DNA from: Perkinsus chesapeaki ATCC PRA-425
Lineage: Eukaryota > Protista > Perkinsozoa
DNA: 56,997 nucleotides
Assembly: GCA_013115145.1 (NCBI GenBank)
Contig: JAAPAO010000181.1
Location: forward strand, 1 to 56,997
Direction: 5' to 3'
Shown: piece after piece, positions 3,630 through 38,260 of the stretch
Layout of the letters: each line of letters begins with the position of its first letter
Position numbering within the stretch: position 1 is the stretch's first letter
Program-made: the position numbers and the translations under genes
Notes under the pieces: model-generated
Told to the model about the DNA's origin: nothing
The model's input: the letters and a program-made list of their open reading frames with translations, nothing else
The model's database searches: none

Positions 3630-6600
3630 TCATCCGAGCCTGATCCACAATCGCCGAGAAATGCTATACCACAGCCTACTCCTGATTAACTGTTCCGCTC
3701 TCGAAAGAACATCGCGTCTCGAACTTGCGTAGAAGAGAATCTCGCCGTGCACGCCTTCTGGAATCCAATACACCGACAGCGGAGCGAAGCGCCTAAATGT
3801 CCGCGGCCTTCCGGAACGCTCAAGCCGCGTGCCGGCTCACGCGTCTGGCAACTCCCGATTGCTTTCTGCTATCTCGGTCCTTTCCAACCTAACGAAGGAG
3901 CAAAATGCCAGAATTTTATTATCGGTAAGTGACCGACGGTCTTTGATGATGATATTTGGCATGCCCATCAGATGCGCATGTGATGGTTACCTTAGGAGAA
4001 TATTGCCCATCGGAATACTTGTTAAATTTCCTGTTAGACTTTTTTTATATCTTCCTTTTCCACGTCAAGGGTTCTAATACATCTTCACACTAGGCAAATC
4101 CTTCTCTTCACAATTTCGATTATATCTTCGCATTGAGGACATTTTCAGACTCGAAATGCACACACTTTCGTGAGGCTAGATATCCCTGCCAGCATCAACA
4201 ACTTACTTTTCCACGCCGAGCAGATTCCTAGTGGAATGGGCTGGAGCGATGAAGTCGTTGCCGCCCAGGGTGATGTGTGTCGGAACATTGCGGAGATCTT
4301 CCGGCCAGAGAATGTTCTGAAAAATAAAATCTAAAAAATTTCCCGTTTTTTTCTGGGAAAATGCAGTTTTTTCCCCAAAAGTCGAGGCAAACACTTCAAA
4401 TATTCCTGAACAAATGAAAGACAATTAGAAAATGCCATAAAATAACATCACAATTCAACAATAATAACACTTACGATGTAAAAACTGGACGAACTGTATC
4501 ATTATTCTGAGACCATCAAAGAGCTGAAACTTCTATAACTTTCCTACCATCAATTTCGCGCTGAGGTTGGTCCAGCAATGCCGAAAGAAGGGGATTTATT
4601 ACACAGATATGAGAATAGTCTGAACTTCACACTCTCAAGCATTGATGGATTAACGTCCATAGCAAAATTCTCCCACATTTCTTCTGAGATGGGATTCCAG
4701 AAAAGTCTTACTTCTTCCCAGAAGAAGTTCCTGCAAAAGGTGTGTACAGTGTAGAGCTCCCTCAAGGAGAAGTACGTGGCCAGCGCACCAAACGGATCCG
4801 AGTGGTCCTGAGAAAAGCATCGGCAGTCTACGGAAGTAGTGTTAACAACCTACGATCTTCAGTGCGTTGTGTAGAAGGTCGCTCTTGACGAGAAGGAAGT
4901 TGACCGGATCAACAAGCGAGAGCGATCGGACTATTGACGGTTGGTAAGCCTGAGAAGTTGGTAAGGATGAGACATGATGGAGGCGGGAAGTCTCACCAGA
5001 ATCCATCTACTGGTGATACAACCAAAGCTGTGACCGATCTGAGAAGAAATACTATTTGCACATAAGAGGCGGCACTGAAGTAATACACGCGGTTACATGT
5101 ATGGACGGAAAAGCCAGAACTTATGGCATAAAAAGTCGAAACGGTCGGCAAGAAACGATTAAAGTAGATCGAGGTGGGGAGTTCATACGAAGCAGTTAAA
5201 TAATGAGCAACTAGAAGTAGATCAATACCGACGTCGTTGATGCACCACGGGTGGGCATGGAAGTACTAGAAGTCTACTTAGGTGAACTACTATAAAGTGG
5301 AGAGCGCGGGAATCGAACCATGCACCTCCAGGATGAAAGACATACACCCTTGTCCACTAAACCATCCAGAACTTACCACATGGCAATGTGTATATCGCCA
5401 AGCTCTGAGCATGTCGATAACACAGGCGCTCATTTCTCTCGCCGATGGAAGATTAACAAATGGACGACACGCAATCTAAAAACACAAACAACTTGTTTCA
5501 CAGGCCCATGAACTCGGGAACACTTTCCAGAACTGCCTATACCGATGTCGCCACCAGAGAGCCATGAATGGTCCTTAAACGTTCCCAGAGGGAACGCGTT
5601 GGACCGTCAAACTTTGACGCTTCCTCTTCCCTTTCCAGGCAGAGCCGGGCTCTGCATATTTTAGCATTCTCGGGCCAGGGCAAAACATACCGATGGCCGC
5701 CTGCTATAATTCTGAGGAAAAATTCCTGAAGCATCTTGGGCCCCTTGAGTACGTCTGTTTCCAGGAACATATTTTCTACCCAAGTTTCATTATTTTTTCA
5801 CGTTCTCCGCTCTAGTGCCAGATGACTTCCTGGTCCCAACCAGCACGAGAATTTCTCATAGCGATCCCGGCGGTGATTGCTGTTAAAATTTCACCTCGGT
5901 GGTGGAGAACTGACCGTGAGCTTACGTGCGGCATGTCCACACAAAAGATGTCCCTGTCCGGAAAGATACGAGCTATCTCATGGACGACCGGTATATAAGG
6001 TAGCAAACCAAGGCCGATGCCATGGCAGACCCTAAACCAGGAGGAACTGTCAGATCATTACCCGTGACTGAAAATCGATCACAGAACTGGTTTTGTGAAC
6101 CACTTCTTCACTCTTAGCAAACTTCAATGTGGTTAGATAACGCCTATGATATGCGCGGTTGGTACGAGAGTGCTCCTCCGACTTAAAGAGGCTACCTCGA
6201 AGGCACGCTGCATAGGTTGAATCATATATATAATATTCATAAAAATAATAACCAACTTTGATACAAAAGCAATCTTCCACGCCGCGGGGACAGTTATTGT
6301 GTTGGACTGCATCCCTGGCGATCTTATCAGTTGATACGCATAGTCGGAGGTAAACGCCTCAGCGTCATTCTAGTGGATTCAGCGTACGTTATCCCTCCAC
6401 TCGATAGGTGCGATTGAAGTAACCGAAGCTATGAGTCAACTTGATACAGCTGCCGCCGTCCTACGGCTTCTGCGAAATCGCTTAAATCGAAGTTCCCGAA
6501 ATGCCGAGGCAACATTAAATTAATCATTTTATAATTTTACTGAGGTGCCTGACAATTACATATCGCAGTATCGCTTACACAATAGGAGTCTTCCTCTGGT

Positions 6601-7400: not shown

Positions 7401-7429
7401 AAATTTCCGATCCAGAAATCGGCAGTGTT

Positions 7430-10324: not shown

Positions 10325-11676
10325 AATAAAGCCTTTTATCAGCTAGGCCGCAAAAACCTCCCCACGGGACGACTGCGCTTTCTGCAACTAATGGTTGCCA
10401 GGAAGTTTCTTGGCATCTGAAGAAATGCTGGAGAAAAAGTGCTATCAGCGCAAGCCCAGGACAAGGCAAATTCGTCGTTCTTGACAGGTTCGATGACTGT
10501 AAAACTTGGATTCTAAGACTTAAAATCGTCAATCAAATCGAGTACTATGGCCTGTTATCGGACGCCATGCTCTCACTATGAACAAGGCTTCGGGAAAGTT
10601 AGTGCTTCCAATCCAGCGACACCACAACGTTTGGTATCGTTCGTGCTTGGTTTGACGGACAGTAAGGGGGTAATAGCGGCGACTGTGCGTAAATACGTAT
10701 TCGCTGTTAAAACATATACTTATTAAACATAATAACGTAATGAGAACGCATGAGACCCAGCCAACGAAGCTTTAGTATCGCGTGCTTTGACAAGTGCCGA
10801 TAAACTTCTGAGGGAACGGTGAAAACCATCAGAGCTAGCCGCAATTTTGAACTGAACCAAGAATCTCTACTGTACATGCGTTAGCTGCCATGCAACTAAC
10901 GTATAGAAGTGAAAGAGAACAGTTACGTTCGGCTGTGTGGGTAACATCAGTCTTTATGCTGCGTGTTGATTACATCCCGCATACGTTAACTGAGGATATC
11001 ACTTAGTGTGATAGTTTCATTGAGGTTTGCTTCTGGATTGATTATTAACTGACCTACATTTCACGTTCTACGTTTCTGTTCGCGCTATGTCGGCCTTGCG
11101 TGTGGAGTATAATCAGTCAGCAGAGGTACTCAACTCTCCGTGGTCTCCGCTTGGTTCACCGCTAAGTTTGGTACCTTTTTGGGGGTAGGTGCCGCACCTA
11201 AGGTGCGGGTTAGTAATGGGGGACATTGTCAGCAATGTTCGACTCAACCTACTGATAAACTATGAGTAGCGTTGTAGGCTGAGCTTCGGAGCACATCACC
11301 GAAGGCCTCACTTAACACCCCCAGTTGACCCCCACATTGAGGTCCCCAGTTGACTAAGTATACACGAGGATAGCGCTACGTAAGTGAAGGTCAGGTCTGA
11401 GCTGTGTTTAGAGCACAACCAGTGTCCTTTTATTGTGCGCGCCAGGATGATCGCAGTAGCTCCGAAATAGGACTGTTTCAGGGGTTGTCCTCCAGAGGTA
11501 CTAGCTGCCAGAAACCGGAGGGGTTGTACTCCGTTTAACTCAATTCCTGCGGCGCCATGCCATGGCGGCCATGGGTATACTTTTCGTGTGTTTCATTGAC
11601 TGGGAGAACCGTCAGCACGCGCGCGTGCCAAACAATGCGTCTGTGATGTCCGACTCAACCTATTGATATACTACTG

Positions 11677-11951
11677 CACCATTTCCCGTGCAAGTTTGAC
11701 AAATGTCCAAGCAACAAGCGAAAGGTGGGAAGTAAAAGGGTTTCGTTTAAAGTGCCGAACTTGGGCGCGTATTGTCAAACTTGGTTGCGTATTGTCATTC
11801 TTGGATGCAATACTGCCAAACAGTTTGACTCTTGGACAAACTTGGACTGGATAAATAGAGGTTCTGTCAAAGATGACTGCACATCGCCAATCTTGGAAGT
11901 GATACTGATATTGTTGCTTGGACATTTGTCAAACTTGCACGGGAAAAGGTG
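11677..11951. mobile_element. MITE, 275 bp, 41-bp terminal inverted repeats, TA-type target duplication
   Basis: CACCATTTCCCGTGCAAGTTTGACAAATGTCCAAGCAACAA ... TTGTTGCTTGGACATTTGTCAAACTTGCACGGGAAAAGGTG, 1 mismatch. The empty site CTAC-TA-GTTCC is present at about 13859-13869. Confidence 0.9.
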
Positions 11952-12362: not shown

Positions 12363-12783
12363 ATGTTCAAAGTGGTGGTTATTAGCCTCCTAGTTAAGCC
12401 TCAACTGGCGGAGGTGGCAGCTCTTGGCAAGTACGCTGGATGGGATCGCAGCCTTAAATTCCTTTGCGTGATGACCGTGAAGAAATCGTCTGAAATGCAA
12501 ATTGTGGCCGACGTTGCTGACGACTAAGTCAAAAAGAGAAGCGTGCTACGGCTGCCGCTTTCTGTACGGTTTATCCAACGGGTTTTCTAACAATAAGACT
12601 GGGGAAGAACTCTACGAGGTTGATATCATCTCCACACCGGAGTGCACGACCAAGGGGTGCCTAGATAAAGTAGCAAGCGATATAGGTGTTGGTAAACATT
12701 GTCGCTGGAATGCATACCCGAAGAATGGCATGATGGATGTCGACGCCTGTGGCTTACACTGGCAGCTGATGCATTTCAGTTAA
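12363..12783 (+). pseudogene. Secreted 6-Cys family copy 1 (A-type), frameshifted
   Basis: MFKVVVISLLVKPQLAEVAALGKYAGWD...QIVADV, then an apparent 2-nt deletion. Continues in another frame as CYGCRFLYG...CRWNAY...DACGLHW. Confidence 0.85.
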
Positions 12784-13679: not shown

Positions 13680-15070
13680 GAGTATAATCAGTAATCAGAG
13701 GTACTCAACTCTCTGTGGTCTCCGCTTGCTTCACCGCTAAGTTTGGTACCTTTCCGCACCGTGCGGGTGAGTAATGGGGGACATTGTCAGCACGTGCACG
13801 TGCTAAACATGTGTCTCAGACACAGTGTCTGTGGTGTTCGACTCAACCTACTGATACACTACTAGTTCCTGTAGAAGCGTTATAGGATGAGCCTTGGAGT
13901 ACATCACCAAAGGCCTGACTCAGCACCCCCAGTCGACTACTTATACACGAGGATAGCGCTACTAATAGGATAGCCACCACTTAGGATAGCGAATCTGGGT
14001 TATACAAGGTAAGGTTCGCTTCTTTTCTTGTACTGAGACACGGAGACTTCTTCTGCTTCTCCCAGTTTCGCGCACAAATTACGTAACACATGGTGTCTGA
14101 CCAAATGACGAAGCATAGTTAGCACTTTGTCAAAGTTCTACCTACCGCTCTCGCGACAATGACCTGATAAAGTTCTCGTACACTCAGTGGAAGGTCGTAG
14201 AACCCTCCCAAGACCGCTGGACCTCCCTGCTCTAAAGCCCTCGGTTTCGAATTGGCGCGGTTCTTTCCCACAGGTTGTGCGAAGAGCGCACACAAGTAGC
14301 CCCCTCACAGAACTCAATTTGCAGCAAGCACCAAAGCTTCTGCTCTAAAAGTTATTCGTGCCATGGTGTAATGTTATCCTCGCAGTTCCGTTAGAAGCTC
14401 TAATTTCACTTAGCAATATGTTCAAAGTGGTAGTTATCACCATCCTAGTTAAGCCTCAACTGGCGGAGGTGGCAGCCCTTGGCAAGTACGCTGGATGGGA
14501 TGATGACTCTCGCTTCTACTGCGAGATGACTGTGAAGAGCTCGTCTGAAATGCAACTTGTGGCCGACGTTGAGCTGGGGAATCTGTCAGAAGTGGACAAG
14601 TGCTTCGACTGCCGCTTCCTGTACGGCTTATCCAACGGGTTTGCTAAGAGTGGGGACGAACTCTATGAGGGTGATTCCATCTCCACATCGGAGTGCACGA
14701 CCTTTTGCCTAGATGAACTAACAAAAGAGATCGGTGTTGGTGAACATTGTCGCTGGAATGCATACCCGGAGAACGGTATGATGGTTGTCGACGCCTGTGG
14801 CTTACACTGGCAGCTGCCGCACAGGAGTTAAGAAATATTTAGTCGTAAGGCGTATCATTTGAAGGCCTTCTGCAGACTGCCTTCATGGTACACAGGATTC
14901 CTATGACAGGAATCATTAACAAGACCGTCTCAGTACTAGTCTCATCCATTTGCCCTTTCAGTGTACTAGGGACACTGTCCATATGACAGTCAAAATTCAG
15001 TCCATTTGATAAAGTTGCGTTTCTGTTAGTTACACGCTGTACTACCCAATGTGACAGTATATAGCGACTA
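13680..15070 (+). repeat. Duplicated cassette, unit 2
   Basis: Homologous to 11100-13030 (see unit 1). Confidence 0.85.
14418..14831 (+). CDS. Secreted 6-Cys family copy 2 (A-type), intact, single exon, 137 aa
   Basis: ATG at 14418, hydrophobic leader, then GKYAGWD-FYCEMTVK-CFDC-YG-CL-CRWNAY-DACGLHW. Confidence 0.85.
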   Translation: MFKVVVITILVKPQLAEVAALGKYAGWDDDSRFYCEMTVKSSSEMQLVADVELGNLSEVDKCFDCRFLYGLSNGFAKSGDELYEGDSISTSECTTFCLDELTKEIGVGEHCRWNAYPENGMMVVDACGLHWQLPHRS

Positions 15071-17134
15071 GCGGCCTGCTAGTCTGCAGTGCAGACTCTG
15101 CACGGTCCCTATAGAGAACGAGAGCGGCTCGGTCTCCGTTGTCAAGGTTCTTGGTGTTCTCATGATACTGTTTGTTGTTAGCAAAGCGGAGCGTTGCGGT
15201 GGTGAAATCGAAGAGCGAGAGAGAGCAAAATGGTAGAGAGCGAAACTCCTGTCCAGCCGTCGCGTACGCGCAACTTGCGCGGCGCAAGGTCTCGACACAA
15301 CGTGCCGAACGCACGCGTGCAGTATCCTAACGAAGCCGATCGATGAAACGAACACGAGGTCGTTCCAAACGATCATGCTTCATGCAGAGCAGAAATGTAC
15401 CGCTGGAAGCATGTTTCGTTACTTCAACCACTCCCCCCGACTCCGGCGATGTGCGCGGGTACATCAAATTTATCCGAATGGTGTAGGCGCACAGAAACAT
15501 CAGCGAGTGAAGGGTTACCGCTAGGGGCAAAAAAGTTTGTCACTCGGTATCCGGTCCAGCAGGATCAACTTCACGCGCTGTGTTTCTACTTTCCCACACT
15601 CTGGTGACCGGGGAGATTTCGCTCTTTGCATGGTATAAAAATCATCGTCACTTGTTACAATTTGTGACTCACAAACCATTCCTGGGACTTTTTCAGATGG
15701 AGATGCAACATTAAGCCGCATCGCCGGGCCCCTCTATGGCTTCCTGTCAAGAAATTGCCATTTCCTGTCAGTCACCCTTTCCGTTTCCGAACATATTTGT
15801 CGCACCGTGGCTCCGTTCGACCACGGGAATCCGCCACGATTATTCCAAATTTGCCGCACCATAAAAAATGAAACCGTAAGATATGCCTACATGTATTTGC
15901 CTCAACCCTCTCAGAGATCGCTTCAACTTTGCCATTCTCTTCTCTCTCGTAATGTTAGGATCCTTCGGCACAAGATGCACCTAGTCGATCACAAAGATAC
16001 TCTCGCACTCGCAAGATTTTTAATTACATTAATCTTGTTCAGCTGCCATCGCTGCCAGAGATACGCGAAATAAAAGTATATCTCGAAAGTCACATAAGCT
16101 CTAAACGCGTGTTTGACAACAAGACCTGAAAACAGCCTCGTCGTCGGTTTTCCGAGATCGCCTGCTGCGTCATTCTTGTTTCACATTGTCGATGAACAAC
16201 AAGAGAGTTACTGGGTGATTCATTATCATCGCGACTTCATGCATGATACCCGCCGAAGACGATCCAGCATCCTCAGAATTCTCCAACTCGCCGAAATATC
16301 CTCCGTGACGTTCCTCATATTGTATCGCATTTTTTGGTAATTTATGTGTTTTTTTCGAAAACTGAAATTATGGATATGATGACACCGAAATTACTTACGG
16401 AAGGCGTCTGAAGTTCCACGGACGCTTCCTGCTTCGATCTTCAATTTCCATCTGAATGAAATCGATCACATGGTCATCCTATCAACCTTCGAAGAATCTT
16501 ACTTAGCTGCAGTATAGGCCGCGACTATCGGCAGAACCATTCTCACTGGCATTACCAGTATCCACTTTGTCAACAAACCTTGAAACGATCGATCGCGCAT
16601 TGCTGAACAAAGCCACCTTGCGCATGCGTGCATACCGATTTTTTCTTACTTTTTCCAAATTTCTTCATTATAATAAATCCTATTAATAATAAAACAATCG
16701 ACTTCACTTTTTTACCTGCAAACTCAATTAAAATGAATCATTTCCAACAAGAACCATCAAAAACCCAGGCTTGTTCAAAAGCCTCTCCACCAGCTTACCT
16801 TCGAGCATTCTTATTCTAATAAACGGTGAGAAAGACAGAGGTTAACTGAATTCAAATCTCTTCTGTCCGACCTTTTCCGGGACCTCCAAAAAACAGGCCC
16901 AAAATCCTCTCTCCGCCCGTAATTATAACAAAGCTGCCTCCTCGCGATTCCAAAAAATTCCGGACGAAATTTCGTGAAATTTTACCATTTCTTGGAAGCC
17001 TATGAAGGCGAAAACATGCATGTATGCCAACGCTGTCCTTTTTCCGAATATTCTCCAACTCCAACGCAAGAGCAAAATAACAAGTGAAAGCACTCATACC
17101 AAAAATAAGGCCGCAGGTTCGAAGCCCAGGCTCG

Positions 17135-23000: not shown

Positions 23001-25012
23001 AAATGCCGACCATATACGCCTGAAACAGTTTTCTTGCGCGCCACAATATTCTACTGTGAGAATGCTATATAAGTGGTGTGCCTTCTATAAGACTCTAATA
23101 AACATTACAAACCCGTTTTCTGGGACCTATTAGCAATACCTGCTAAATTTTATTTGTGCAGTATGAAAGAGGTCTCTGCTCCGAGACGAACAATAGAATC
23201 TTGGTCTGGTCTAGCAACATATTCCCTATCAAACCTATTGCTATCATTCCTCCCCAATATAAACATTTCTCGGTGAGACTCGAAAACACACACACTTCAG
23301 TTCGTATTGGCGCTGCTCACGCATACCAAACACTTCCATGCTCGTGATTAAACAATAACAATTTTAGAAAGTGAGTTATTGGAGAAGAGCATCAGATGGA
23401 ATGAGTCCTGTTTCCTTTTGCTCTCATAACATATACCGGGAATCATGATATCATACCTCCCAACAACCAGAGGCTTGCGGACCGCAGAGGCTAGTCGAAC
23501 CAATCTAAACTGCTGCCCTCCTTCCTGAATAACCCAGGTTTATTACTAGCTAGCTCCGCCGCTGTCTCAACATGCCCGTTCCGTATCTTAGCTCGCCAAC
23601 TAAGACCTCGAAATGGAGTGCGCCACGAAATTCATCTTACCGGAAGAAGGTGAGAATCCATACAGCTGGCAGAACCGCTCTCAAGGGGGCGACGATGAGC
23701 CATCGGCTGGCGAACCGCCGACCCCTTTCGGTGCCTGGGGGCGGCGGCGGAGTCCAGGCGTCATAGTGGCGAGTACAAGTGCGTCACTTCATTAGCGAAT
23801 AATTTCGAGCATGATTTATATAAATAATCCTTGTTGTATTATACCAATACAACTTACTACTCACTGCAGTGATGAGCTAATGAATAGGGATCATTAAAAT
23901 GATACGCTTTCGAGTGAGAACAGAGTGAGTTCGGCCAATAGTGTTCGTTGGCGAGTTGGATACAACAGACTAACTTTTAGCGATAGCTCTGCCGAGAAGA
24001 TAAACATATAACACATCGAAACAACAATGCTACATGCTATTGAATGCCTACAAGGCACCTCATGAAAGCATGTGAAAGCTATACAGTATAGCCGAATATT
24101 TCTACAAGTAATACTGTGTAGTATATACGTACAGTAATACTTCTAAAAATATTCGACTACCATGAATCGGCAAACCTCGAACATCAATCATCCAAGAAAT
24201 CTCCTCCCTACCTCCAAGCATGGCTGCCATGACCAGAGCCGCAACTGCCTTGGCTGCTTTAGAGGAAAACGAGTGAGTTCGACCTGGTCGAGGCACCACT
24301 AATCGCTCACAAGCAATCGTTTGTAAGAATGGAGACGATGAAAATGGATCGCCAACTTTCAGCGACATCGCTGAAAGTTGTAATAATTGAGGCTAGCTGG
24401 GAGAGAAAAATAATTCATAGTGAGCGGAAACCGTAGAAAGATTGGCCGGATAACTTATCAGCCAGGAGTTGATGAAGCCTGTCGATCTGAGTTGAAAAAT
24501 ATGATTTTGTGCGCCAGTCGAATGAGCCATTCGAATCGGCTCGGTCATTCGGAATGTGACCGGAGCCAATTCGGTACGTTACAGAGGAACCCAACCGATG
24601 CCGAAAGTAGTTTCAAGATGAGGCTTACTGAGTGAGGGTACACCAACCACTGAGCTAGTGCTGCTCATGGGGTCTTACAGAGAGGGACTAGTGTAAAAAT
24701 AACTACACGAAATAACAGGTAGCAAATCTGGAGCATTCATATGAAGAATAGTGAAATACCGATGAACTTGAACTCAAGAATCAAGCTAGAAAATAAAGGA
24801 AAGTCTTCTGAGAGTTTCATTTGATTGATTATCTGAGTCTGAATTCCTACCTGGCGTTAGTCTAAGTACCGGAATGGGCGTGAATGGACTAAGTCTATTC
24901 CCGCTCCGGTGGTGCGATCAGTCGCCTGAGCATCTCTCAACTGCCTGACAAGCTGAGTAGACAACCGATGTCGCGGGACAAACAGTGCCCCATAAAATAA
25001 GGTGATCAAATT

Positions 25013-26669: not shown

Positions 26670-29600
26670 ATGACCAGACGGTTCCTCGCCTCGACCTCGC
26701 GTATCACCTTTAATAGGCTAACTACTAATATCACAGGTATCTTAGCTCCACCCGTACAAGATTCTTAATAGGTTAACTTTCTGTCAGCTCGTTCGGCCAG
26801 TAACGCTGCTGCAGCTGCTCATGTAGACTTCAACGGCAATTCTCCCAAAGTAAGTCGCTTACGCCATAACGGCGCTACATTCCCCCGTAGATCGCTGAAG
26901 TCCACATTCAAGCGCATCCTAGAAAATATCACGACAAAAGGGTCTTCAACTTCTCAGCCGGTCCAGCTGGCCTTCCCGATGAAGTGAGTTGGGAGAGTTA
27001 TAAATATAATTCCAATGAGAGGGTTTGCATACCAATAAACCTTTAATAATGTTGCTCGTAACATTTGCGGAACTTAAAAGCTGATTTCCCCCAGCAATTC
27101 ACCAAGTATCGGCAGCGTATCTTCTCAGTAGGTTATGCTGGAAGCTCAGCGTGATTTTATTAATTATGACGGTACAGGTATGGGCTTTATGGAGCTCTCT
27201 CATAGAGATGTCGATGGTCCTTTTCAGACGGTAAGCTCGAGCGCTAGGCCCTGTTGGTCTCCCTTGTGATACTGTATAGGACAAGTCGGCCGAAATTTTG
27301 GAAATTCCGTTCGGGGTTATTCGGCCAGTGGGAAATATTGTAGCCTCACTGGCATGAGCCTCATGCGAAAAAATATCTTCGTGCCATGAGGATATTTCAA
27401 TAAGTATTTTGCCATAATACGGTACCTGTGGTCTTCGGGGTGGGCAACCAACGGAAAATCCTTGCTTCAAGATATGATATTTTGCAACCGTTTGCAAAAA
27501 ATAGCTTTCTTTAGTATTGGAATTCCCATAGTTGAAAATCTGTCTTAAATTCTTGCTAGAATGTGTTTTATTCGCCCGCGGAAATGTCAGTGACGATGAA
27601 TCCTTCTGGCATGCATCTGCGTTGTGTTCATTCCGACATGGAAGATCCTCCATGACCGTCGGGCTCCACGGAAGTGTAAAAGTCCACGCGAGATGGGTTA
27701 TTGAGGCTGCTGCCATCTTAGGGGGAATTTCGGTATACAGGTTGTCATTCTTGATGCATTCAAATGACATAATATGGTGATGACTGATGTGCCAGGTTCT
27801 TGCTCAAGCTGAGAACAGACTGCGCGATATGCTCTACATCCCTAACAATTATAAAGTGGGATGAGGTGGTCACCCAGATGAAGTTGGATTTGGGTTTGGT
27901 GTTAGGTTATGTTCCTACAGGGAGGAGCTCATGCACAGTTTGCTGGAATACCGCTGAATTTATTCCATCCAGAATTGGGACATAAGGTGAGAAAAATGCC
28001 GGGCCTGGGGATCGAACCTGCGACATGACTTCCTGTGCGGGATGGACAGGAGATCTTACTAGTGTACAACATACGGAGAAGGGCGGGTTTACGTGTTTCT
28101 GCTGCTGCTGGGATCGATCGGCGGTATAGATAATAATAATAAATACATTGCCTGTTGTATACCACTTTATCAATTGAATTTGCATTTTCACTTGGTAATA
28201 TAAGGGATATAATATCAATGTTGATTGAGTAACAAATCGGCAATGTTTTGCCTAATCGAGCGGTCTAGTATTGAGAGCGTGAGGAGTGTTATAACAGAAG
28301 AGAATCTTTTAAGGAGTTCCTGTGCTCGGCTATGTCACCGCTGGAGCGATTAGCCGAGACATAATATCGGTCAGATGGGAGATGCTATTGCTCTGCAGGT
28401 TGTTGAGTACATCGATACCGGTTATTGGGGTCAACGCAGTCTGGGTGAGTGTGCTAGAATGATTGGTGGAGATAAGATCAAGGTTATTAATAAGGAGTTT
28501 AATGATCGTTTAGATGGGAATACTAGAGGACTTCCAGGTAGTGAGGGGAAGATCGTGGGTTCGAATCGCGGTAGGGACATTTTAAATGTAATTTAAGTTG
28601 TCTATTTGGAACTATTTTACAACTCAAAAATCCTATATCACATTTGTTCTTGAAGCAATCAAAAACAGTCAGAAAATCAATACCTTATTTTCAATAAGGT
28701 TAATTGTAAACTCTATGTGGTACCGCAGTTGGGCGTATCTTGAGGTTGAGCATGCAAGATTCATATGAGCCCGGTTGCTTCAGGTTTCTCCGATCTAGAT
28801 CTCACCACACCACCTGAAGAAGTTGCTTTCACTCATTTCACAGCTAATGAGACCATGGAAGGTTTGGAGTATCTCGATGACGCCATGGCTGCGGCCCTGA
28901 AGGATTCTGGGCGTGATGTCGTTATCGATATGACCAGTACGCTCCTGTCGAGGCCTGTTAACGTGGAAAAGTAATAATAACGGCGATGAGGGGGGTTTAT
29001 ATATTATGATATAGAATATGTTTTTGGGCGCACGATTACCACATGGAGCATGGGACTCTTCATGGTTCTTTCGGGACTTGTACTCTAGCCAAAAATCGTT
29101 CCGTCGGGCCTTAGTGCCACTTCCCTTCCGCTGGGGTCCCAGAGGAGGGTGTGGGTCTTACCTGGTCGTCTGATATGATTATCAACATTATGTCACTCCT
29201 CGAGTAGTTGGTAAATGATGTGTGTTTTCATACGCCATAGAGATGGGTAAATTAGGTAAGTTGAATGTTGATGAGTACTGAATCGGGGGGATATGAAATA
29301 GTAATAAATGAAGTTATATATTAGTCGAATGATGCTTATTGGTTTCGATGATTCGACCTGTCAGTTACGGCGTCATCTATGCTTCTGGTGGCAAGAATCT
29401 TGGTCCGGCTGGAGTCTGCCTCGCTATTGTTCGGGATGATCTTATCAGACCAGTAGGTTTCCATTCAGTTCTCAGGCGAGCGCCTTTATCGGTCTGTGGG
29501 TCGTTGAGCGAGCATCATAGCGGTGAAAAATGGTACATTTGAAGCTCGAATTTGGGATGGTTTTTCGCTACGGGGAATTTCTTAACAGAAAAGTTTGTTT

Positions 29601-30420
29601 TCTGTTGATCGAGAAACAGTCTTTCGGTATTATTCCTTTCCGCTTCTCTCTGTGCCAAGTTGTAACACTAGGAGACATTGCATCGGTTTCCGAACTCTTT
29701 AATTGGAAGACGAATCTCAAATTGTTAGCTAATTGTCATCTCACCTTGTCAGAATTCGCCCGGATATGCCTGCCCGTCTGTGATTGATTTTTACACTCAA
29801 TCGACCTCCACACCGCTTTGCAGTCTTTACAACACTCCGCCCACCTTTGGCATTTATATGGTCAATTTAATGCTGGGATATTATCAAAGGAAATATGGCC
29901 AAGCAGGGACACTGGCAAATATTGAGAAGGAAGCCATGTAATAAAAATGGAGGGGGTGGGGATCGAACCTGGGTGTGTTGTTTCAGTCGACGAGCGAATA
30001 AGGTTTGGGGGACAGTTGACCGTACTAACGGATTTTATACTGTAGGATTTTTCGTGATTTTTCGATAGATTTTTTGCCGAATTTCAGAGTCCCGTTCGCC
30101 CTGCTGATCGCAGCAGAATGTCGGTGTGCGTTCGCGCTAGAGGAGGCGATCGAGCGTTGGAAGACCGGTTTGTTGCCGAGGTGATGGAAAATAATTTCGC
30201 GGCGCGTGACGGTGTTTTTGTAGGCTGAAGAGGCGGATTTATTTCAATTGCAGGGGAATAAAATAATTGGCGGCATTCGAGTTACTCTGTAAGTTGCCGG
30301 GTGCCGGGATCGAACTCGGGACCTCTAGATTGGCAAAGCAGTTACAATGGCGTCAAGGACGAAGCCGTTAATGCCGCGTGCGACTTTCTGGAGGAGTTTG
30401 CCAAACGTTGTAGTAGTTAA
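26670..30420 (+). CDS. serC: Phosphoserine aminotransferase (SerC/PSAT1 family, class V PLP enzyme), 14 exons, N-terminal extension
   Basis: Joined exons: RVFNFSAGPAGLPDE|VMLEAQRDFINYDGTGMGFMELSHR...IPNNYK|VMFLQGGAHAQF...YIDTGYW...TANETMEG...IDMTSTLLSRPVNVEK|YGVIYASGGKNLGPAG...SLYNTPPTFGIY...RSRMSV...GGIRVTL|YNG. Confidence 0.95.
27997..28024 (-). pseudogene. tRNA 3'-end relic, antisense in PSAT intron starting at 27987
   Basis: GTGAG AAAAA T GCCGGGC CTGGG GATCGAA CCTGC. Antisense terminator plus canonical 1+7+5+7 spacing. Confidence 0.7.
28550..28583 (+). pseudogene. tRNA 3'-end relic, sense in PSAT intron starting at 28538
   Basis: AGATC GTGGG TTCGAAT CGCGG TAGGGAC A TTTT. Confidence 0.65.
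29948..29972 (-). pseudogene. tRNA 3'-end relic, antisense in 49-nt PSAT intron 29938-29986
   Basis: GTAAT AAAAA T GGAGGGG GTGGG GATCGAA CCTGG. Confidence 0.65.
30295..30341 (-). pseudogene. tRNA 3'-half relic (Phe/Cys-like), antisense in 53-nt PSAT intron 30289-30341
   Basis: Sense reading: TCTAG AGGTC CCGAG TTCGATC CCGGC ACCCGGC A. Confidence 0.7.
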
Positions 30421-31164
30421 GAGATACTTCAAGGTGATATATGGGATTCGAGTGAGAGGGATATTTTAGTCGCAGGTATTCTCTGTTATTTTGTCTTGTT
30501 ATTTTGAAATCGATCGTCTGATCGATTTCCTGCCGATGCAGCCAATCAGGCCAGAACCCCTTGATAGGCTATCTTCGGTTTGCATTTCTTTCACACTGTG
30601 AGGATATCACAGACTGCAAAGCTCGAGGACAGCAAATGTAATAATCTATTACGAGGAAGGCGCAGCCAAAAATGCACCGCAGTCGTGACTTAGGTTCTTG
30701 ATACATACAGACTTAAAGCTTATTTATATAGTCGCCGAATTTCGTGGCGCGCGGTAGTTTTATGCTGATTGATCGGGCCAGAACCCCTCGGTTGATTAGC
30801 GACCACCGCTGCGACGCGGAATGGAAATTCTGCAACTCTATGTTCTTGTATACAAATGGTTCGCTGCTTGAGGCAGTTTTGAAATGAAGAAGAAGTGGTT
30901 GAATTGTTAATTAACCTGGGGGATTGGGATACAGAGGGACGACTGCTGGGTACTTTTATAATTTATTTTGGTTGTTGAAGTTTGAGATGGTATGGGGATA
31001 ATGCGGATAAAATGCAGGCAAGGAGCGCAGCGATGGTTGCCATTTTAGGAATGTAGAAGAAATGTGGGATGCTGAGTGGTGGAGCTGTTAGATGATGTTA
31101 GTCGGAGGAGGGGGGGGAGTTCTGATGGGTTACTGGTCGGGGCGAGACGAAAGTGTGTGTTTTT

Positions 31165-32433
31165 ACGGGGATGATACTCGGATTTTTCGGAGCTCGGGTT
31201 TGCGTGTGAAAGGGGAGTTTGGAATACATTTGGTTTCTTAAGAGCAGAAAGAGACGGGGTAAGCGATCCTGGTGGGCACAGCTGACTCCCTTTAGTATAT
31301 CTCAGTTTGGTATGATAACTCATTAAATGCCCTGGTCGTCACTCTTCCCGTTTAACTTTCATGATGAGGTTATTATCTCATCGGGTTTGAGTGTTAGAGC
31401 TTGTTGGGTTATTCAGGCCGTTGGGGAGCTGCTGGGGATGTCGGCATTTTGTGGAGTGATGTAATAGGGGTGGGAGGGGTAGCGGTTAGGATTGGCAAGT
31501 AGTAGGTAGTTTAGTAGTAAGTTGGTTATATTGGTAACCATTATTATACTGAATAATAAATCGGTATTAATTAACTACATTAATCCTACCAGTAAAATAT
31601 TGAATGATTTACTAGTAGGATTAATGAAATTAAAGTACTCTACTACTGGCGGACTACGATCGTCGTCGTCGTCGTTGTTGGTGTATTGTAGGTTCGTAGT
31701 GATAATAATGAAATGAGAATTGATTTTAAAATTGGCGTCGTTTCAATGGCATTATATACTGAATGGGATTCTGGGTAGCAAAAAGGAGTATGTAGAAGAT
31801 ATATTATACACCAACTGAAGCTGTGGGGTTATTACTGACGTAAATCCAGGGGCTTAAGGGTAGACAACGAAGACTGATAACGGTTTGTGGGGAGATAAAA
31901 GGCTGGTTGTTACTACCCTCTCACAAGGACAGAGGGTGCGTGCACAGAAATTATTGGCAGATATTAGGTCCCCACATTTCCATCCTAGCTTGTATGAGTC
32001 TTCGGGCCTCAGGCATTCGTCTTCCACTGCAGTACACTATCATCATCACCCCGCCACCACCAGCAGCAGCAGCTTTGCTGGCGCTCGGTCCTTTATTGGC
32101 GCGACAACAGGATTGCCGATTATGCCACCTGCGATGGGGACAGGACCGACACAACCGGGGCAGGGTCCACAGATGACAGGTTATAAGGGCGGCTGGCAAT
32201 CTGGAGCTCGTAGGGGGATTTGAGTTTGGTTATGGTGACCGATCTTAAATTGTCGGAAAACTAGGTTATAGCACCGTGGTCGATGCAAGCGTGGAGCTAA
32301 GATTCAGTTCTTGTGAGGTACGGTGATGCCACCACCGCAGCCGGGGGCGCCGCAGACGTATCCGACAGTACCACCGACGGCTGCATATCCACCGAACGAT
32401 GCGAATCACCAAGCACCGGATGATATAGGGTGA
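31165..32433 (+). CDS. Hypothetical multi-exon protein with Pro/Gln/Gly-rich C-terminus (boundaries approximate)
   Basis: Plausible exons GVWNTFGFLRAERDG|YISVWYDNSLNAL..., IMPPAMGTGPTQPGQG and MPPPQPGAPQTYPTVPP...DDIG* with GT-AG sites. The full join was not verified. Confidence 0.35.
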
Positions 32434-32879
32434 AAATACAGGGTGCGGGCAGGGGTCGTATCTTACGGTTGAGCATGCATTTGATGATTTAATAGATACC
32501 AATGGATAGGACTGCCTGTTGCTCGTATGCACGCATAATGCAGCTTTGAGCATAAATTTTAGATAGTTGTGATTGGTGTCGGCATACTTGACCATTTCAA
32601 GATCGTAAAAGGCAGAACCAATTTGCGATATTAGACTACTCAACCAAGAGGATCTCTCATAACGAAAAGGAAACCCGAGAGTATTAGGAAATGCAATGAG
32701 ATAGAGCTTAGGAATGGCACAGGCACTGTGGCACTAAGATAGTGCAAATTAATATAGCCAATATTTGTAATTGATATATGGATCCTAGTATACTGGAGCT
32801 AGTAGTAGTAGTATAGACAATATACGTAAGTACAACACAATCTACTGTAACAAGCTCAATTGCATCATTTGAGGCTAAA

Positions 32880-32947
32880 TGGACGTGCCGGGGTTTGAAC
32901 CCGGGGCCTTCTGCATGCAAAGCAGACGTGATACCACTACACACCGG
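32880..32947 (-). pseudogene. tRNA-Ala(UGC) pseudogene lacking a pairing 5' acceptor strand
   Basis: D-arm GTG TAGTGGTAT CAC, anticodon arm TCTGC TTTGCAT GCAGA and T-arm CCGGG TTCAAAC CCCGG all pair. The 3' strand CACGTCC has no GGACGTG partner. Confidence 0.8.
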
Positions 32948-33126
32948 CTGGGTGGAAAAATCGAGAAAAGGAAGGGGGAAAAGGGGGGGAGAAAAGAAGA
33001 AGAAAAAAAGGATTATTATGGCTGCAATATCCCATCTAACACTATTCAAAGTTCGAAAACCCCACTATCCTGATAGATTACAACCCAACACCTCACAGTA
33101 AATGAAAGAGTGCTTTATTGGTGTCG

Positions 33127-33830
33127 TCAAACTTCAAGTTTGCGTTTATATTCACCATGCTGCATTTGCTCCTGTAGCGAGCCTCGTTCACGGCGAGGCG
33201 GTATCACTCCTCGCCTTCTTAGCAATGAACCTGACCATATGAACATGAAATCAGTCGTGGAAAACAAGGGCTTACGCGGCTTCCGCATCTCTTGCCTCCT
33301 CTGGTGGTCGCTTCTTCTCCTGATATCGGATCCGCTTCGCCTCCCTTCTCCTTGCCATCTTTGCCTCGCTGCGCTTCTTCTTCAGGGCTCTCAACTCATC
33401 AACCCGAGTGGGCGAGATGTTGCCGGCCAAGGGGCAGAGCCAGGTCAACTTTTGCTCTTCGTCCGAAAACCTCTCGTGACCAGGAAGAAAATTGCCCTCC
33501 TTATCTCGTATAACCGCGCTCAGAGGTATACCACATAATCCTAGTCTCAGGCCAGGCGGCGAAGCCGCCTGGCCTGAGACTAAAATGGCCCTCTTATATA
33601 ATCTCCCCCGGGTTAACCGGATAGCGCAGAGGCGATAAACCACCGCACACCACACGCCCGGTGAGAATAACGATGCATGTATTCGAGTCTAATAGATACG
33701 ATGCGGCGTCTGCACGAGCGGCCAACCGAGTTTCCTTTCTTGTATTGGGGGCAGCTGCCGCCCTTGGCGCAATTATCGGTATGTGGCTTAGAGGGTGAGT
33801 GTGCCACGAAGTTCACTAGCTCAGTCACCA
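33127..33830 (-). CDS. Hypothetical protein, multi-exon (5' end unresolved), TM-like segment and basic coiled tail
   Basis: LEYMHRYSHRACGVRWFIASALS|GLCGIPLSAVIRDKEGNF...RALKKKRSEAKMARRREAKR...EAA|RRGVIPPRRERGSLQEQMQHGEYKRKLEV*. The joins keep frame. Confidence 0.55.
33542..33582. other. Perfect 19-bp inverted repeat with GAA loop
   Basis: TAGTCTCAGGCCAGGCGGC GAA GCCGCCTGGCCTGAGACTA. Confidence 0.97.
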
Positions 33831-34446
33831 TTGTTCTGTCAGCGGGCGAAGGGCAAGTCAAGGCGACTCTGACAGCGATATGGACAGCGATTGCTCATGA
33901 TCGTGCATGTCGACATTTTCTGGTGTTTCGAGAGGGTGCTTGCGTTACTATTCCAGTGGGTAGCGCCATCTAGCCTTACCGAATACTCTTGCTCATGTGG
34001 AGGAGATATAACAAATATCTTTTTTCCGGGACATTTTCCGGAAGGCTTACATCATCGGAGGGGGAAGTCTTCCGGAGAATATCTTCCTAGATGGAAAGTA
34101 CGCATTTATTCCTTCTGAAGCTCCTCGGGTAGGATTTGCCCTATGCTTGACTCCCTCTTAAATGCGCATGTGCCAGCACCGGTGTCGGAGTCACTTCAAC
34201 TAGTAACGGTTTGAGGCGAGGAAGAGTGAGCTCTGTTCCAGTTAGATCAGCGCGTTTGGTACGAAGCAGTTGGCTTGCGGTGGAGACGCTCACTCATCGG
34301 CACACACTGAGTAAGGATCGGAGGAGGCTTTGTGGTGTTTAATAAAAGGATCGCGCTGAGCCTTCTGGGGGCACTTGGGTATCTAGAGAGGCGGAGTCTT
34401 CACCAGCGAGTTACTGACCATATTCTTGATTGTATCAAAAATGGAT

Positions 34447-35250
34447 ATGGCCGGCTCAATCTACAGCCTAATGACCCATCTCAGGTCTTGTTTCGCCAAC
34501 TCTTTCGCGCCACCACCACAAGGATTGCCTGTCGGTCTACAACCTGGAGGCACATGGCCGCCGCCGCAGCAGCAAGGCGGAGGAGTACAGGGTGAGAATC
34601 AGGGGAGTTTTGGGAAGTGAGAACAAATGAGCCTATTATTTTTCGTATTCCCTAGCGGCGGGTTAATACCGATATAGCTCTATACAGTGTGAAGCAATCT
34701 AGGGATTCATAGAGTAGCATTCACAAGTATTCCCATAAGGTATACATTTGATGCTCCCTTTTGCCTCATATAGCGGGAAGTGGGATGCTGCCAAGTGTAA
34801 GAATTAGTCAAGTAGTTTTTTGATTTAATGATGAATCGACTAAGCTTAGAATTCTTGGGGCAGTTGGTCAAATACGATTTCAAGAGTAATCTTTATCTTA
34901 TCTCATCTCCTAATTTTTATGGCAGATTTTGTGGTCGAAATTTAAGCCGTCTCTCATCATCTCAGGATTCGCTCCTCCGTCGTGGCCTCCCGCGGCACCT
35001 CCGGCCGCGGCGCAGCAGCAGCAGCAGCCGTTGATGAACGTACATCCGCCGACTGCAGCTGAACCGCCGAGTGTTAGAGTTAGCGGGGATTCGTAAGATG
35101 ATGATTCTGCGTACTTTTATCGTTACTGCAGATACGCAAACGAAGCGAACAGGGCGGCGGAGAGAATATCAATGTTGGTCCTCGGAGGAGCGGCGGCGTG
35201 CGGCACTCTAGCGGGACTCTGGCTGGCTAAGTGCTCCCGACTACGGTTAG
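34447..35250 (+). CDS. Hypothetical Pro/Gln-rich protein fragments (structure unresolved)
   Basis: FAPPPQGLPVGLQPGGTWPPPQQQGGGVQG| and GFAPPSWPPAAPPAAAQQQQQPLMN| are bounded by AG and GT. Confidence 0.3.
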
Positions 35251-35490
35251 TGAGCTTGTCATTGTTTTATCAGGCCTCGCGGAGATAGAGGCGGAGACTC
35301 GGACTCTGACATGGAATCTGACAGTGATTGATGCTCTGCATGCCTGCTTTCATTTCTCGTTCATTTGACGACATTGCGTTTTCCAAGGAAGTGGCGGCGC
35401 GACTATGGCGCGAACGAGAGTAACCACTTAGTTGTGATGCAAAGTGTAGCGGCACACAGTCACTTTCATCAGTCAGAGGGGAGAAGCCCC

Positions 35491-38260
35491 ATGAGTGAGG
35501 TTGGAGGCAGTGGGAGTCTGGATGACTTCACAGAGCTTGCTCCACTTGGCGAGGGCGCGTACTCATCAGTGTAACGTAAACTGCTGACTGCCTTTCGAGA
35601 GTTGGCCGTGGGCAGGTATAAAGTGTTAAGGAAATCGAATAGGAAGATTTACGCGCTGAAGAAGGTGAAGCTTCCGAGTTTGTCGGAGAAAGAGAGGCAG
35701 AATTCCCTCAACGAAGTTAGGCTGCTGGCGAGCATTAAGCACGAGTCTGTGATAGCGTAAGGGCGTATAAGCCGGATGGCGGGATCGAACCGCCGACCTT
35801 CAGTTTACAAGACTGACGCTCTACCACTAAGCTAAACCGGCTTATTTTTCGAGTATGGATTTTCCTACTGCTTCTTATCTACTCAGTTACAAAGAGGCTT
35901 TCTTCGACGACCGAGCACACCAGCTTTGCATTGTCACCGAGTACGCCGATGGAGGAGATCTATTTCAAAGGATCGTAACACTTCTGATTCCATTCAACAG
36001 CGCAGCTCGGTGCTCCTGGGTCAGGTGCAGCACCAAAAATCTAGATTATATATGAGAGAGCAGGATGTCTGGCGAATCTTCATAGGAATGTGTTACGGCT
36101 TGAAGGTGAGGCGCGGATAGATTCGACTGAAAAGGAACCCGACTTAGGCACTGCATGATTTGAAAATCCTCCATAGAGATTTGAAGAGCGCGAATGTCTT
36201 CTTGACTCGCAGCGGTGATGTTAAGCTGGGTGACTTCAACGTCTCCAAAGTCGCCAAACGCGGACTGCTTTACACTCAAACAGGCACACCCTATTACGCC
36301 AGCCCTGAGGTAGGCATTCTTGCAGGCATATGTGTGTGAAGCAAGGGACTTTGTCAGGTTTGGAAGGACATGCCTTATGATATAAAAAGCGATATCTGGT
36401 CCCTCGGATGTGTCCTTTACGAAATGGTCGCGCTGCGTCCGCCTTTCCGGTGAGACTTTTGGATCTCATACCACAACATAGCAATCTTTCAGCGCGGATG
36501 ACATGGAAGGTCTTTATAGGAAAGTTTTGAGAGGGATCTTCCCTCGTATACCGCCTTGCTTCAGTCCTGATTTAACACAAGTAACATCTTCCGTCTCGTT
36601 GGCGCCGATAACCGTGTGTAGGTCATAAGTATGTTACTGGTCGTTAATCCTCATCATCGCCCCACGATACCACAACTGCTCCACCAGCCTGTCATGCAAC
36701 GTCACATAAGAGATATTCATAACGTAAACTCGTCACTAGGACCGCTAGGCTAGCAGCCACCGTTCGCAGGTTCGGAACCCCTCCGTGATGGAAGCCGACT
36801 CGGGCGGCGGAGGTCTTCTAAACACCATCAAGCTCCCTAAGAACGCCAGTGCGACCGATCTCGCTAAGTACCGAATGTTAGCCGCCTATTTCACCATCGT
36901 AACCTCCTTAGTATAATGCCAAAGCCTCGTTATGATGATGACGGCCCTGTAGATGACATGGGAAGACATCCATCTGCCGGAGTGTATGCAGCTGCATTTA
37001 AAGTGATGCTATCCCTAGTGGTATAGGTTCCAGTCATCACGGAATACTCCACCGTCTCGAAAAGATTCCGATTACGGCACCCAGCCCCAACATCCGAGTT
37101 TACCAGTGGAGCCTCACCGCTACGAGGGTTGCCCTCTATCACCCATCAAGGAGAGCAGTAGCGGTGATCTGGCCGGCGGGTGAGAGTCTCGGACGCAACC
37201 GTGACGAATGATCTGCGATCCATTAGACCACGACCAGGACCGAATAGTATACTTCACGAGCTTGATGATGCTTTGGACCGTCTGCAACAAGAGCAGCAAC
37301 ACATTAACGAGCACCGTCGGCATGCCCAACGAGAACGACAGCAGCATCAGGCGCACAGTGGCCATCGGCAGTATGTGGGTGCGGGTAGCCCTCTGGGATA
37401 TAATGATTATAATAATAGGTCAGTATGGAAATACTACTTCTGAAGTTCTTAACATTTTTCTCAGATACTATGCAGGAGGATCGAGAAGAGGGTCAGGCCG
37501 CCAAGCTGGTAGCGCCGTGTCAAAGCGGGTAAGTCTATTATCTCTAGCCGGAATGGTCTAGTTGGTCATGACGATCGCCTCACACGCGATAGGTTCCGAG
37601 TTCGATTCTCGGTACCAGTATTTGATCATATGTTTTAGTCGGTTGGAAGCAGCTACCAACGTAGTCCTCCGCAATACGGCGCCCCTAGACACTATTATGG
37701 TGGCTCCCTTAACACCCGCATTCCCGGAAGGCCTCCGCACGGTAGTCTTTACACTGTTAATCACTCTTCGAACGTTGCGTGACAGGCCCGAATGTTGCCC
37801 ATCACCCAGGGGCTCAGCAACAGCATTACGGCCTGAATCACCGCGATGGAACAGCCTCGAGAGGAAGTGAGATATGCTTCCTAGTGGCCCTTTAAACTCT
37901 CTTTAAGGTCAGCAACAGGGGCTTCCACAGATTCACGGCCATAACCCAGTATATCCTGGAGGTGAGCATATCGCATTCTGCTCACCCGGAATCACCCCAA
38001 ATGGCGCTCCTCAGGCATTCGCTACGGCGGCGGCGGAGGTGCTTACGCAGCTTATCAAGGTCATCATCACCAACGAGTAGCAAGGTAGCTGCGGCAGACT
38101 TAACGATTACCCCAAGTCTCCCCACAGTGGTGTGGCGGGCGGTCGCCGGGTTCTCGGGCCATCTCATGCTCTCGGAGTTGGCGGCATGCCCTTGCTGAAT
38201 CGTGGAAGGCCAAGAGTGAGAGGGACGCATTCTTTTGTTGTCTACCGGCGTTCAGGTTTA
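35491..38260 (+). CDS. NIMA-related Ser/Thr kinase (NEK family) with long low-complexity C-terminal tail
   Basis: LGEGAYSSV|YKV...YALKKV...NEVRLLASI...A|YKEAFFD...[10 protein letters not shown]...[12 protein letters not shown]...KLGDFNVSK...[11 protein letters not shown]|VWKD...[13 protein letters not shown]...RPT. The tail exons join in frame to a stop near 38260. Confidence 0.95.
35770..35841 (-). tRNA. tRNA-Thr(UGU), intact cloverleaf, antisense in NEK intron 35757-35886
   Basis: GCCGGTT TA GCTT AGTGGT AGAGC G TCAGT CTTGTAA ACTGA AGGTC GGCGG TTCGATC CCGCC ATCCGGC T. Confidence 0.95.
37547..37620 (+). tRNA. tRNA-Val(CAC) with two acceptor-stem mismatches, sense in NEK intron 37529-37638 (possibly pseudo)
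   Basis: D, anticodon (ATCGC CTCACAC GCGAT) and T arms (CCGAG TTCGATT CTCGG) are perfect. Acceptor is GCCGGAA/TACCAGT. Only TTT follows. Confidence 0.8.

Follow-up and report, generated by a model that had tools for sequence, protein, structure and literature searches.

What becomes of a tRNA gene that lies within a spliceosomal intron, and what it leaves behind when it dies, is the question raised by one contig of Perkinsus chesapeaki, a parasite of oysters and clams. The window analysed here is the complete contig JAAPAO010000181.1 of strain ATCC PRA-425 (56,997 nt), which was compared with one locus from each of two relatives: a Perkinsus olseni locus (L001) that is colinear with window 16000-38341 (~22 kb), and a gapped Perkinsus marinus locus (L003) containing the orthologue of one hydrolase gene, termed hydrolase 2, and part of PSAT. 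A preliminary description had reported nine tRNA-derived sites in the introns of four genes, and all nine are real: they lie inside GT-AG introns, in both orientations, and belong to two paralogous hydrolases, PSAT and a NEK-like kinase. As described below, tRNA genes of either orientation sit in short Perkinsus spliceosomal introns, ~8-18 nt from the 5' splice site, examples being those for Thr and Val in P. chesapeaki and for Ala in P. olseni. Dead copies are reduced to 3' halves or to the B box, the core of which has been preserved by selection. The explanation narrowly favoured here is that these cores have been kept because they still dock TFIIIC, a factor of RNA polymerase III (Pol III), as do the ETC sites of yeast.

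The introns of PSAT were defined by exact mapping of the annotated P. chesapeaki protein (P0011) onto the DNA, which yields 14 introns; the end of intron 14 (30341) was set by hand, and the corrected intron set translates to the annotated C-terminus. Kinase introns were taken from a joint two-species splice model together with in-frame exon blocks conserved in P. olseni, except that the Thr intron received no joint model call and both its borders were placed by hand on donor and acceptor sequence common to P. chesapeaki and P. olseni. Introns of the kinase and of the hydrolases are defined solely by exon conservation across two or three species and, as colinearity between the P. marinus locus and the window ends beyond PSAT, the tRNA introns of the kinase were compared in two species only. 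Annotated gene spans were available for window 16670-40420 (L002). A looser test, which accepted any open frames either side of a GT..AG pair, was far too permissive and was dropped. The flanking exons had been said to join in frame, and this is borne out by the exact mapping in PSAT and by conserved in-frame exons elsewhere. Splicing of two relic-bearing introns of PSAT is confirmed by contigs from two small runs labelled 'RNA?', the RNA nature of which is a guess; these contigs skip 27987-28398 (412 nt) and 28538-28783 (246 nt) exactly, with GT..AG ends, and also skip three relic-free introns.

Whole tRNA genes were called with ARAGORN and Rfam (RF00005 threshold), both of which recognise tRNA-Thr(TGT) at 35770-35841 on the minus strand (70.3 bits) and tRNA-Val(CAC) at 37547-37620 on the plus strand (54.8 bits). 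Each occupies an intron of the plus-strand kinase, a protein whose best solved relatives are NEK1 and NEK7 and whose gene has 15 introns of 31-51 nt and two larger ones. The larger two are the tRNA-bearing introns: intron 2 (35757-35886, 130 nt) holds the intact antisense tRNA-Thr, 13 nt from the donor, and intron 12 (37529-37638, 110 nt) holds the sense tRNA-Val, 18 nt from the donor. On the minus strand, Rfam alone finds an Ala(TGC)-like copy at 32880-32946 (44.7 bits). It lies antisense in a 1236-nt intron (32430-33665) of an unannotated plus-strand gene and is split, with 65 nt of its 3' part at 32880-32944 and 13 nt of its 5' part at 33647-33659. The 338-nt intron 5039-5376 of hydrolase 1, on the minus strand, carries in sense a full-length broken Glu(TTC)-like copy (~5296-5370), which starts 6 nt after the GTAAGT donor, has its B box at 5309-5319 and is called by neither ARAGORN nor Rfam. 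Together with the shorter relics these copies form a decay series that runs from the intact Thr gene, through Val with two acceptor mismatches and the broken full-length Glu-like copy, to 3' halves and finally to the B box only. As a separate observation, the intact antisense tRNA-Thr (within 35757-35886) and the intact antisense tRNA-Ala of P. olseni (within L001 15760-15846) have no T4 terminator within reach, and the splice donor and a coding exon of the host gene follow them at once.

Among the shorter relics, four belong to the plus-strand PSAT gene. An antisense 3' half (27990-28028) stands 5 nt past the GTGAG donor of intron 7 (27987-28398), a sense relic (28548-28588) stands close to the donor of intron 8 (28538-28783), intron 11 (29938-29986, 49 nt) is nearly all antisense tRNA 3' half, and intron 14 (30289-30341, 53 nt) consists of GTAAGT followed by an antisense 3' half. 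On the minus strand, the 53-nt intron 17901-17953 of hydrolase 2, placed by the joint splice model, is likewise nearly all antisense tRNA 3' half, and the 42-nt intron 18148-18189 contains a sense B-box relic directly before a mini-exon (18106-18147) that encodes (I)GHSFG. Three sites can be added to the nine first reported: the split tRNA-Ala; a plus-strand tRNA 3' half at 17107-17143, which is not intronic and lies 9 nt past the hydrolase-2 stop codon; and a weak minus-strand 3' half at 211-248, in a long intron (~95-704) of the phosphoribosyl pyrophosphate (PRPP) synthetase gene, for which no counterpart was seen in the P. marinus intron. ARAGORN and Rfam call none of the short relics, except for an Rfam T-arm/acceptor match at 17889-17942(+) that in part borrows exon bases.

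Every relic fits the B-box consensus GGTTCGAWYCC with no more than one mismatch, and at this threshold the window contains 17 matches where 100 shuffles predict 3.07, no shuffle reaching 17. A similar excess is present at the P. olseni locus (12 against 1.75 expected) and at that of P. marinus (10 against 1.42). About 12 distinct sites in the window look tRNA-derived, as judged by a T loop, an AGGTC ahead of the T stem and, in about half, a 5+7+1 spacing to a T-run; about three matches (39599, 40714 and 49249) are chance-like, in agreement with the shuffle expectation. The short relics start at about tRNA position 33-44, so that the 5' half and A box are absent, and they close in the gene's own T-run, with no unrelated body and no tail. 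This T-run occupies its canonical place in 12 of 25 relics, for which chance would give an estimated ~5%. A profile built from 31 relic sites found nothing beyond its training sites and, hence, no further degraded relics. Three well-kept tRNA 3' halves were also seen in an unannotated AT-rich stretch of the P. marinus locus (L003 15616-15656, 15842-15882 and 16952-16992, minus strand); two of these represent a duplicate at 226-nt spacing, and two are flanked by GT...AG at the distance of a tiny intron.

The arrangement of the relics within their introns is regular. Introns with antisense relics run from the donor (5-7 nt) through an A-run and one base to the acceptor strand and T arm, and in intron 17901-17953 donor, A-run, acceptor strand and T arm are followed by the variable loop. 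Three independent introns with antisense relics have the B box 22 nt from the donor and a fourth has it at 18 nt; the sense relic of hydrolase 2 has it at 21-22 nt in all three species and, over both orientations, its distance from the 5' splice site is 17-29 nt, mostly 22. Antisense copies adjoin the donor, 0-3 nt separating their T-run from the splice site beyond it. The T-run of sense relics also serves as the pyrimidine tract ahead of the acceptor, as in a 50-nt PRPP-synthetase intron of P. marinus (L003 ~972-1020). Tiny introns with relics measure 42-59 nt and ordinary ones 41-56 nt. In the colinear stretch nine of ten sites are intronic, compared with ~70-75% of the non-coding DNA, a rough estimate over the modelled 21 kb (binomial p ~0.2), and a preference for introns over intergenic DNA is thus not statistically shown in this window. 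The sites are nevertheless non-random in their motif excess over shuffles, their conservation at orthologous positions and their placement beside the 5' splice site, the last of which extends to introns of 246-412 nt.

These sites are also old. All ten in the 22 kb colinear stretch, namely three tRNA genes and seven relics, occur at orthologous places in P. olseni. For the seven relics, six B boxes and a degraded seventh were seen in ~920 nt of orthologous P. olseni sequence, where ~0.07 would be expected by chance. Three relics extend to P. marinus: the two in hydrolase-2 introns (17901-17953, with orthologues at L001 2267 and L003 3129; 18148-18189, with orthologues at L001 2520 and L003 3484) and that of PSAT intron 11, in which all three species, P. 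olseni at L001 13340-13386 and P. marinus at L003 ~11432-11482, have the same 14-nt core, GGGGATCGAACCTG. The B box is kept in P. olseni for PSAT intron 8 (L001 11720), for PSAT intron 14, the counterpart of which is a 51-nt intron (L001 13763-13813), and for the non-intronic relic (L001 1337-1347); the orthologue of PSAT intron 7 is a 59-nt intron (L001 11493-11551) in which the box is degraded. The 5' end of the P. marinus intron 7 (L003 9280-9935), where the relic would lie, is unassembled, and the intron holds a ~60-nt tandem repeat beside assembly gaps. Greater depth is provided by the hydrolases. Exon mapping shows that intron 5039-5376, which is followed by an exon (4997-5038) encoding IGHSFG, is paralogous to intron 18148-18189, and the relic before this exon is common to both genes. 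As the exons of the two hydrolases are 55-65% identical, compared with 84-94% between orthologues, this relic is older than a gene duplication that is itself old. None of the sites is confined to P. chesapeaki, and so no recent 'birth' is seen. The relics are ancient rather than fresh insertions. The preliminary description had envisaged a cycle of birth and death of intron-hosted tRNA genes, with comparison of orthologous introns as its measure; that comparison does reveal decay, for Ala and Val, and no lineage-specific gain anywhere in the colinear stretch, so that a fast cycle is not upheld.

If the sites are ancient, have they merely been slow to disappear? Between P. chesapeaki and P. olseni (PSAT protein P0001), identity at the 175 four-fold degenerate sites of PSAT is 39%, and the alignment of 19 ordinary short introns with their orthologues scores 0.51, where shuffled partners give 0.47, from which it follows that neutral change has reached saturation. 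When 16 relic pairs, orthologous or paralogous, are compared, B-box positions 2-7 and 10 (tRNA G53-A58 and C61) show 94-100% identity, compared with 30-48% for 46 positions flanking the same boxes. The three outer pairs of the T stem, which the B box does not include, can still form in 28 of 75 cases (0.37), no more than chance predicts, and the conserved feature is therefore a linear motif rather than a tRNA-like fold. The T-run is not consistently retained between species, which fits a site that binds a factor without being transcribed. Taken together, these comparisons indicate that the B-box core (G53-T-T-C-G-A58 and C61, often with the preceding AGGTC of the variable loop, itself partly kept between species) is held by purifying selection. 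The earlier supposition that the relics are simply being lost is not supported for this core, since a sequence under purifying selection is not merely on its way out.

Loss of the remainder of the gene can, by contrast with its core, be followed as it happens, as had been proposed. The tRNA-Thr is identical to that of P. olseni at 71 of 72 positions, with diverged intron flanks. Two acceptor-stem pairs of tRNA-Val are broken in P. chesapeaki only, the P. olseni gene being intact (64.7 bits). The tRNA-Ala of P. olseni is also intact (68.3 bits) and fills an 87-nt intron, with 8 nt before the gene and 7 nt after it. In P. chesapeaki this gene has been split near the A box by an insertion of ~0.69 kb (32945-33646) with a 4-bp ACAC duplication, and a second insertion of ~0.44 kb lies between donor and tRNA; the surviving 63 nt are 100% identical in the two species. 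Neither insertion has another copy in the three loci. The larger one includes a perfect 19-nt hairpin (33542-33582), and an annotated 184-codon gene, 33188-33831(-), that lies within the Ala insertion and intron may be spurious. P. marinus is known to contain Dada transposons that target tRNA genes, together with an unusually large complement of these genes (PMC3706591). Once a copy has been killed, whether through insertion at the A box or through mutation of its stems, it erodes, and its intron shrinks back towards the usual 41-59 nt.

What, then, would keep the core? TFIIIC is, to our knowledge, the only known reader of the B box. We judge it slightly more probable than the contrary that the cores persist because they still dock this factor. 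tRNA genes live in introns, copies die and their bodies erode, and the B-box core, which alone persists, would serve as a DNA docking point inside genes transcribed by RNA polymerase II (Pol II), without making tRNA. Docking might in turn serve as a chromatin boundary or organiser, or might affect transcription or splicing of the host gene. A precedent exists in the yeast ETC loci, B-box-only sites that are occupied by TFIIIC but not by Pol III and function as boundaries (PMC3395662). A role at the level of DNA is favoured because one conserved relic (17116, corresponding to L001 1337) lies outside introns and others, whose introns measure 246-412 nt, are a long way from the 3' splice site.

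Several points weigh against this explanation. Occupancy of the relic B boxes by TFIIIC is purely inferred, and the material is a single 57-kb contig with two relatives. The constraint is not absolute, given that in P. olseni the PSAT intron-7 relic has lost G57 of the core and that in P. marinus the relic of intron 8 is decayed. A near-fixed distance between B box and donor is not predicted by a pure chromatin role. The core TTCGAA is palindromic, and another dimeric DNA-binding protein, or a reader acting on RNA, could also recognise it in both orientations. In tiny antisense introns such as 29938-29986, moreover, the only adenosines at branch distance lie in the B box, and a role in splicing is possible.

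This last point leads to the first of the alternatives, in which the TTCGAA-centred motif would be an RNA-level splicing signal of very short introns, either a branch site or an enhancer ~22 nt from the 5' splice site, and its tRNA origin mere history. Such a signal would account for the regular spacing from the donor in both orientations, for a palindrome that reads identically either way, and for antisense relic introns of 47-53 nt in which no adenosines 18-25 nt upstream of the 3' splice site are found outside the B box. However, the motif is equally conserved in PSAT introns 7 and 8, where it is >200 nt from the 3' splice site, and in the relic that lies outside any intron; 37 ordinary tiny introns, from which no clear branch-site consensus emerged, have no such motif; and G53 and C61, conserved next to the palindrome, agree with the tRNA promoter and not with a known branch-site consensus. 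On balance, a splicing signal seems an improbable explanation.

A comparably small likelihood attaches to a second proposal, that the relics are selected DNA sites for a factor other than TFIIIC and form one of several classes of palindromic intronic motif read by ordinary transcription factors. It draws on the existence of further conserved and partly palindromic motifs, among them TGATCGATTT, with four exact copies in the window against 0.24 expected, and TTTCGYGGCGC, with three against 0.06. Yet the conserved positions of the relics coincide exactly with the invariant positions of the tRNA B box, G53 and C61, which fall outside the palindrome, among them; part of the upstream AGGTC is retained as well, and the sites are demonstrably of tRNA-gene descent.

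These additional motifs merit description in their own right. TGATCGATTT recurs in tiny introns (window 6072, 16459 and 18644 on the minus strand and 30519 on the plus strand), is found in P. olseni at L001 849-898 and 11362-11411, where the upstream hydrolase has it in the orthologous intron, and looks like a second class of conserved intronic motif. PSAT intron 13 has retained the GC-rich AATTTYGYGGCGCGYGA in three species (window 30181-30223, L001 13647-13697 and L003 ~11680-11722); the core of this motif, TTTCGYGGCGC, occurs also at 23620-23630 and 30740-30750 and presumably resembles an E2F-type site. In the hydrolase-2 intron after the GHSFG mini-exon, CGTTGAGGAARTGYAAGA...GCAAGATTT is common to three species (window 18050-18105 on the minus strand, L001 ~2398-2453 and L003 ~3248-3300), although ordinary introns are saturated. 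As other short motifs are conserved in the same introns as the relics, introns at this locus do carry DNA signals.

It is far less probable still that the relics evolve neutrally, as remains of dead intronic tRNA genes, and look conserved only for want of time since the species parted. Decay of Ala and Val is indeed in progress and some relics have decayed in one species, but the saturation of four-fold sites and ordinary introns, the contrast between relic cores and their flanks, and the survival of one relic since a gene duplication much older than the species split largely refute this idea. The proposal that the sites are copies of a mobile tRNA-derived family (a short interspersed nuclear element (SINE), a miniature inverted-repeat transposable element or something introner-like) which inserts into or creates introns has hardly any likelihood, for although tRNA-related sequence adjoins intron ends, the antisense splice site falls just beyond the T-run, the P. 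olseni Ala intron has only 8 + 7 nt of non-tRNA sequence and Dada transposons exist in P. marinus (PMC3706591), the copies are alike only at tRNA consensus positions and belong to several isotypes, no colinear-stretch site differs in presence or absence among species, and no terminal repeats or shared tails were seen.

TFIIIC docking thus remains the preferred explanation, and its standing can be gauged against systems already described. A more ambitious version, which we regard as unlikely though worth stating, is that dead intronic tRNA genes constitute a genome-wide set of TFIIIC-docking B boxes ~22 nt from 5' splice sites, linking a Pol III factor to transcription, splicing or chromatin of the host genes, and that many tiny introns were born as tRNA-gene insertions, with a donor recruited beyond the terminator, in the manner of an ancient tRNA-derived 'introner'. 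No description of tRNA genes or B boxes in Perkinsus introns, or of intron gain by tRNA genes, was found in the literature. In nematodes and vertebrates, tRNA genes are nested in introns of protein-coding genes in either orientation, as functional Pol III genes within Pol II introns, and in this respect the Perkinsus genes are similar. The host introns of those animals, however, are long and the tRNA is a small passenger, whereas in Perkinsus an intron of 87-130 nt consists almost entirely of the tRNA gene, which lies 8-18 nt from the donor, and what remains of dead copies is a B-box relic, under selection, within an intron of 42-59 nt.

The closest parallel is with the ETC sites of budding yeast and the COC sites of fission yeast, which have a B box without a functional tRNA gene, are conserved among relatives, and are described as binding TFIIIC in the absence of Pol III and as influencing chromatin (PMC3395662). 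ETC and COC sites are intergenic and few; the relics of Perkinsus, known here from their sequence, are intronic, often take up the whole intron at a near-fixed distance from the 5' splice site, and are visibly tRNA-derived. B boxes of tRNA-derived SINEs, such as mammalian B2, MIR and Alu, have reportedly been exapted as TFIIIC-bound or insulator sites (PMC4382998), and there too a tRNA-type B box, able to bind TFIIIC, persists in introns. SINEs, though, have a 5' head with A and B boxes, an unrelated body, a tail and large families, whereas the Perkinsus relics are single-copy orthologous 3' halves with a terminator. Introners (PMC11282704) share with them short introns whose whole body is one kind of sequence, with splice sites at or near the ends of the element, but the relics form no near-identical multi-copy family, lack insertion polymorphism and target-site duplications, comprise several isotypes and are ancient. 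Insertion at or near the A box, as in the broken tRNA-Ala, recalls the Dada elements of P. marinus; these measure 4.7-11 kb and produce 6-7-bp duplications, in contrast to an insertion of 0.69 kb with a 4-bp duplication and no transposase seen, and the Dada paper makes no mention of introns that host tRNA genes (PMC3706591). Isotypes in the window include Thr, Val, Ala, Glu-like and others, in agreement with the original argument against a single SINE family. By their sequence, then, the relics are neither one mobile family, nor a tRNA-derived SINE, nor an introner. Overall, the earlier observation is confirmed and extended and its interpretation partly supported.

Some further features of the contig were recorded. 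Just past the PSAT stop codon an RNA contig skips 42 nt (30432-30473) with GT..AG ends, which resembles an intron of the 3' untranslated region. The PSAT exon 27280-27339 (DKSAEILEIPFGVIRPVGNI) is annotated, yet is missing from the P. olseni PSAT, and one RNA contig without it, which represents a divergent allele or copy, joins ...DVDGPFQT to VLAQAE; this exon may be mis-annotated or alternative. Over window 28397-28869 the same runs contain a second PSAT transcript form at higher depth, with numerous third-position differences (19 in 140 nt); it could stem from a paralogue, from a divergent haplotype or from a second strain present in the culture. An open reading frame of 234 codons at 27102-27803(-) was rejected as a gene. 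The relic-free right third of the contig is largely taken up by a family of small, apparently single-exon genes with the motif ...D.CG.HWEL... and no Pfam match, seven in all, of which two are on the plus strand (12481-12780 and 14349-14828) and five on the minus strand (39445-39933, 44286-44792, 46272-46724, 48186-48596 and 51017-51484). Pfam searches with long open reading frames gave almost no matches, because the exons are short, and the MMETSP fragment P0002 has no genomic record.

At a single locus these sequences provide a dated series, from a working tRNA that fills its intron, to a broken gene, to a 3' half, to a B box only, with the comparison of the paralogous hydrolases giving time depth, and this series makes the question of whether tRNA genes can seed or shape spliceosomal introns a testable one. 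It also explains calls of pseudo-tRNAs within genes and flags errors of annotation, such as spurious genes in expanded introns. The Perkinsus lineage stands at the base of the dinoflagellates and near the apicomplexans, where gene regulation is poorly understood. If TFIIIC does dock at the relics, Perkinsus would reveal, on a large scale, how an element of Pol III promoters is reused as a signal within genes transcribed by Pol II.

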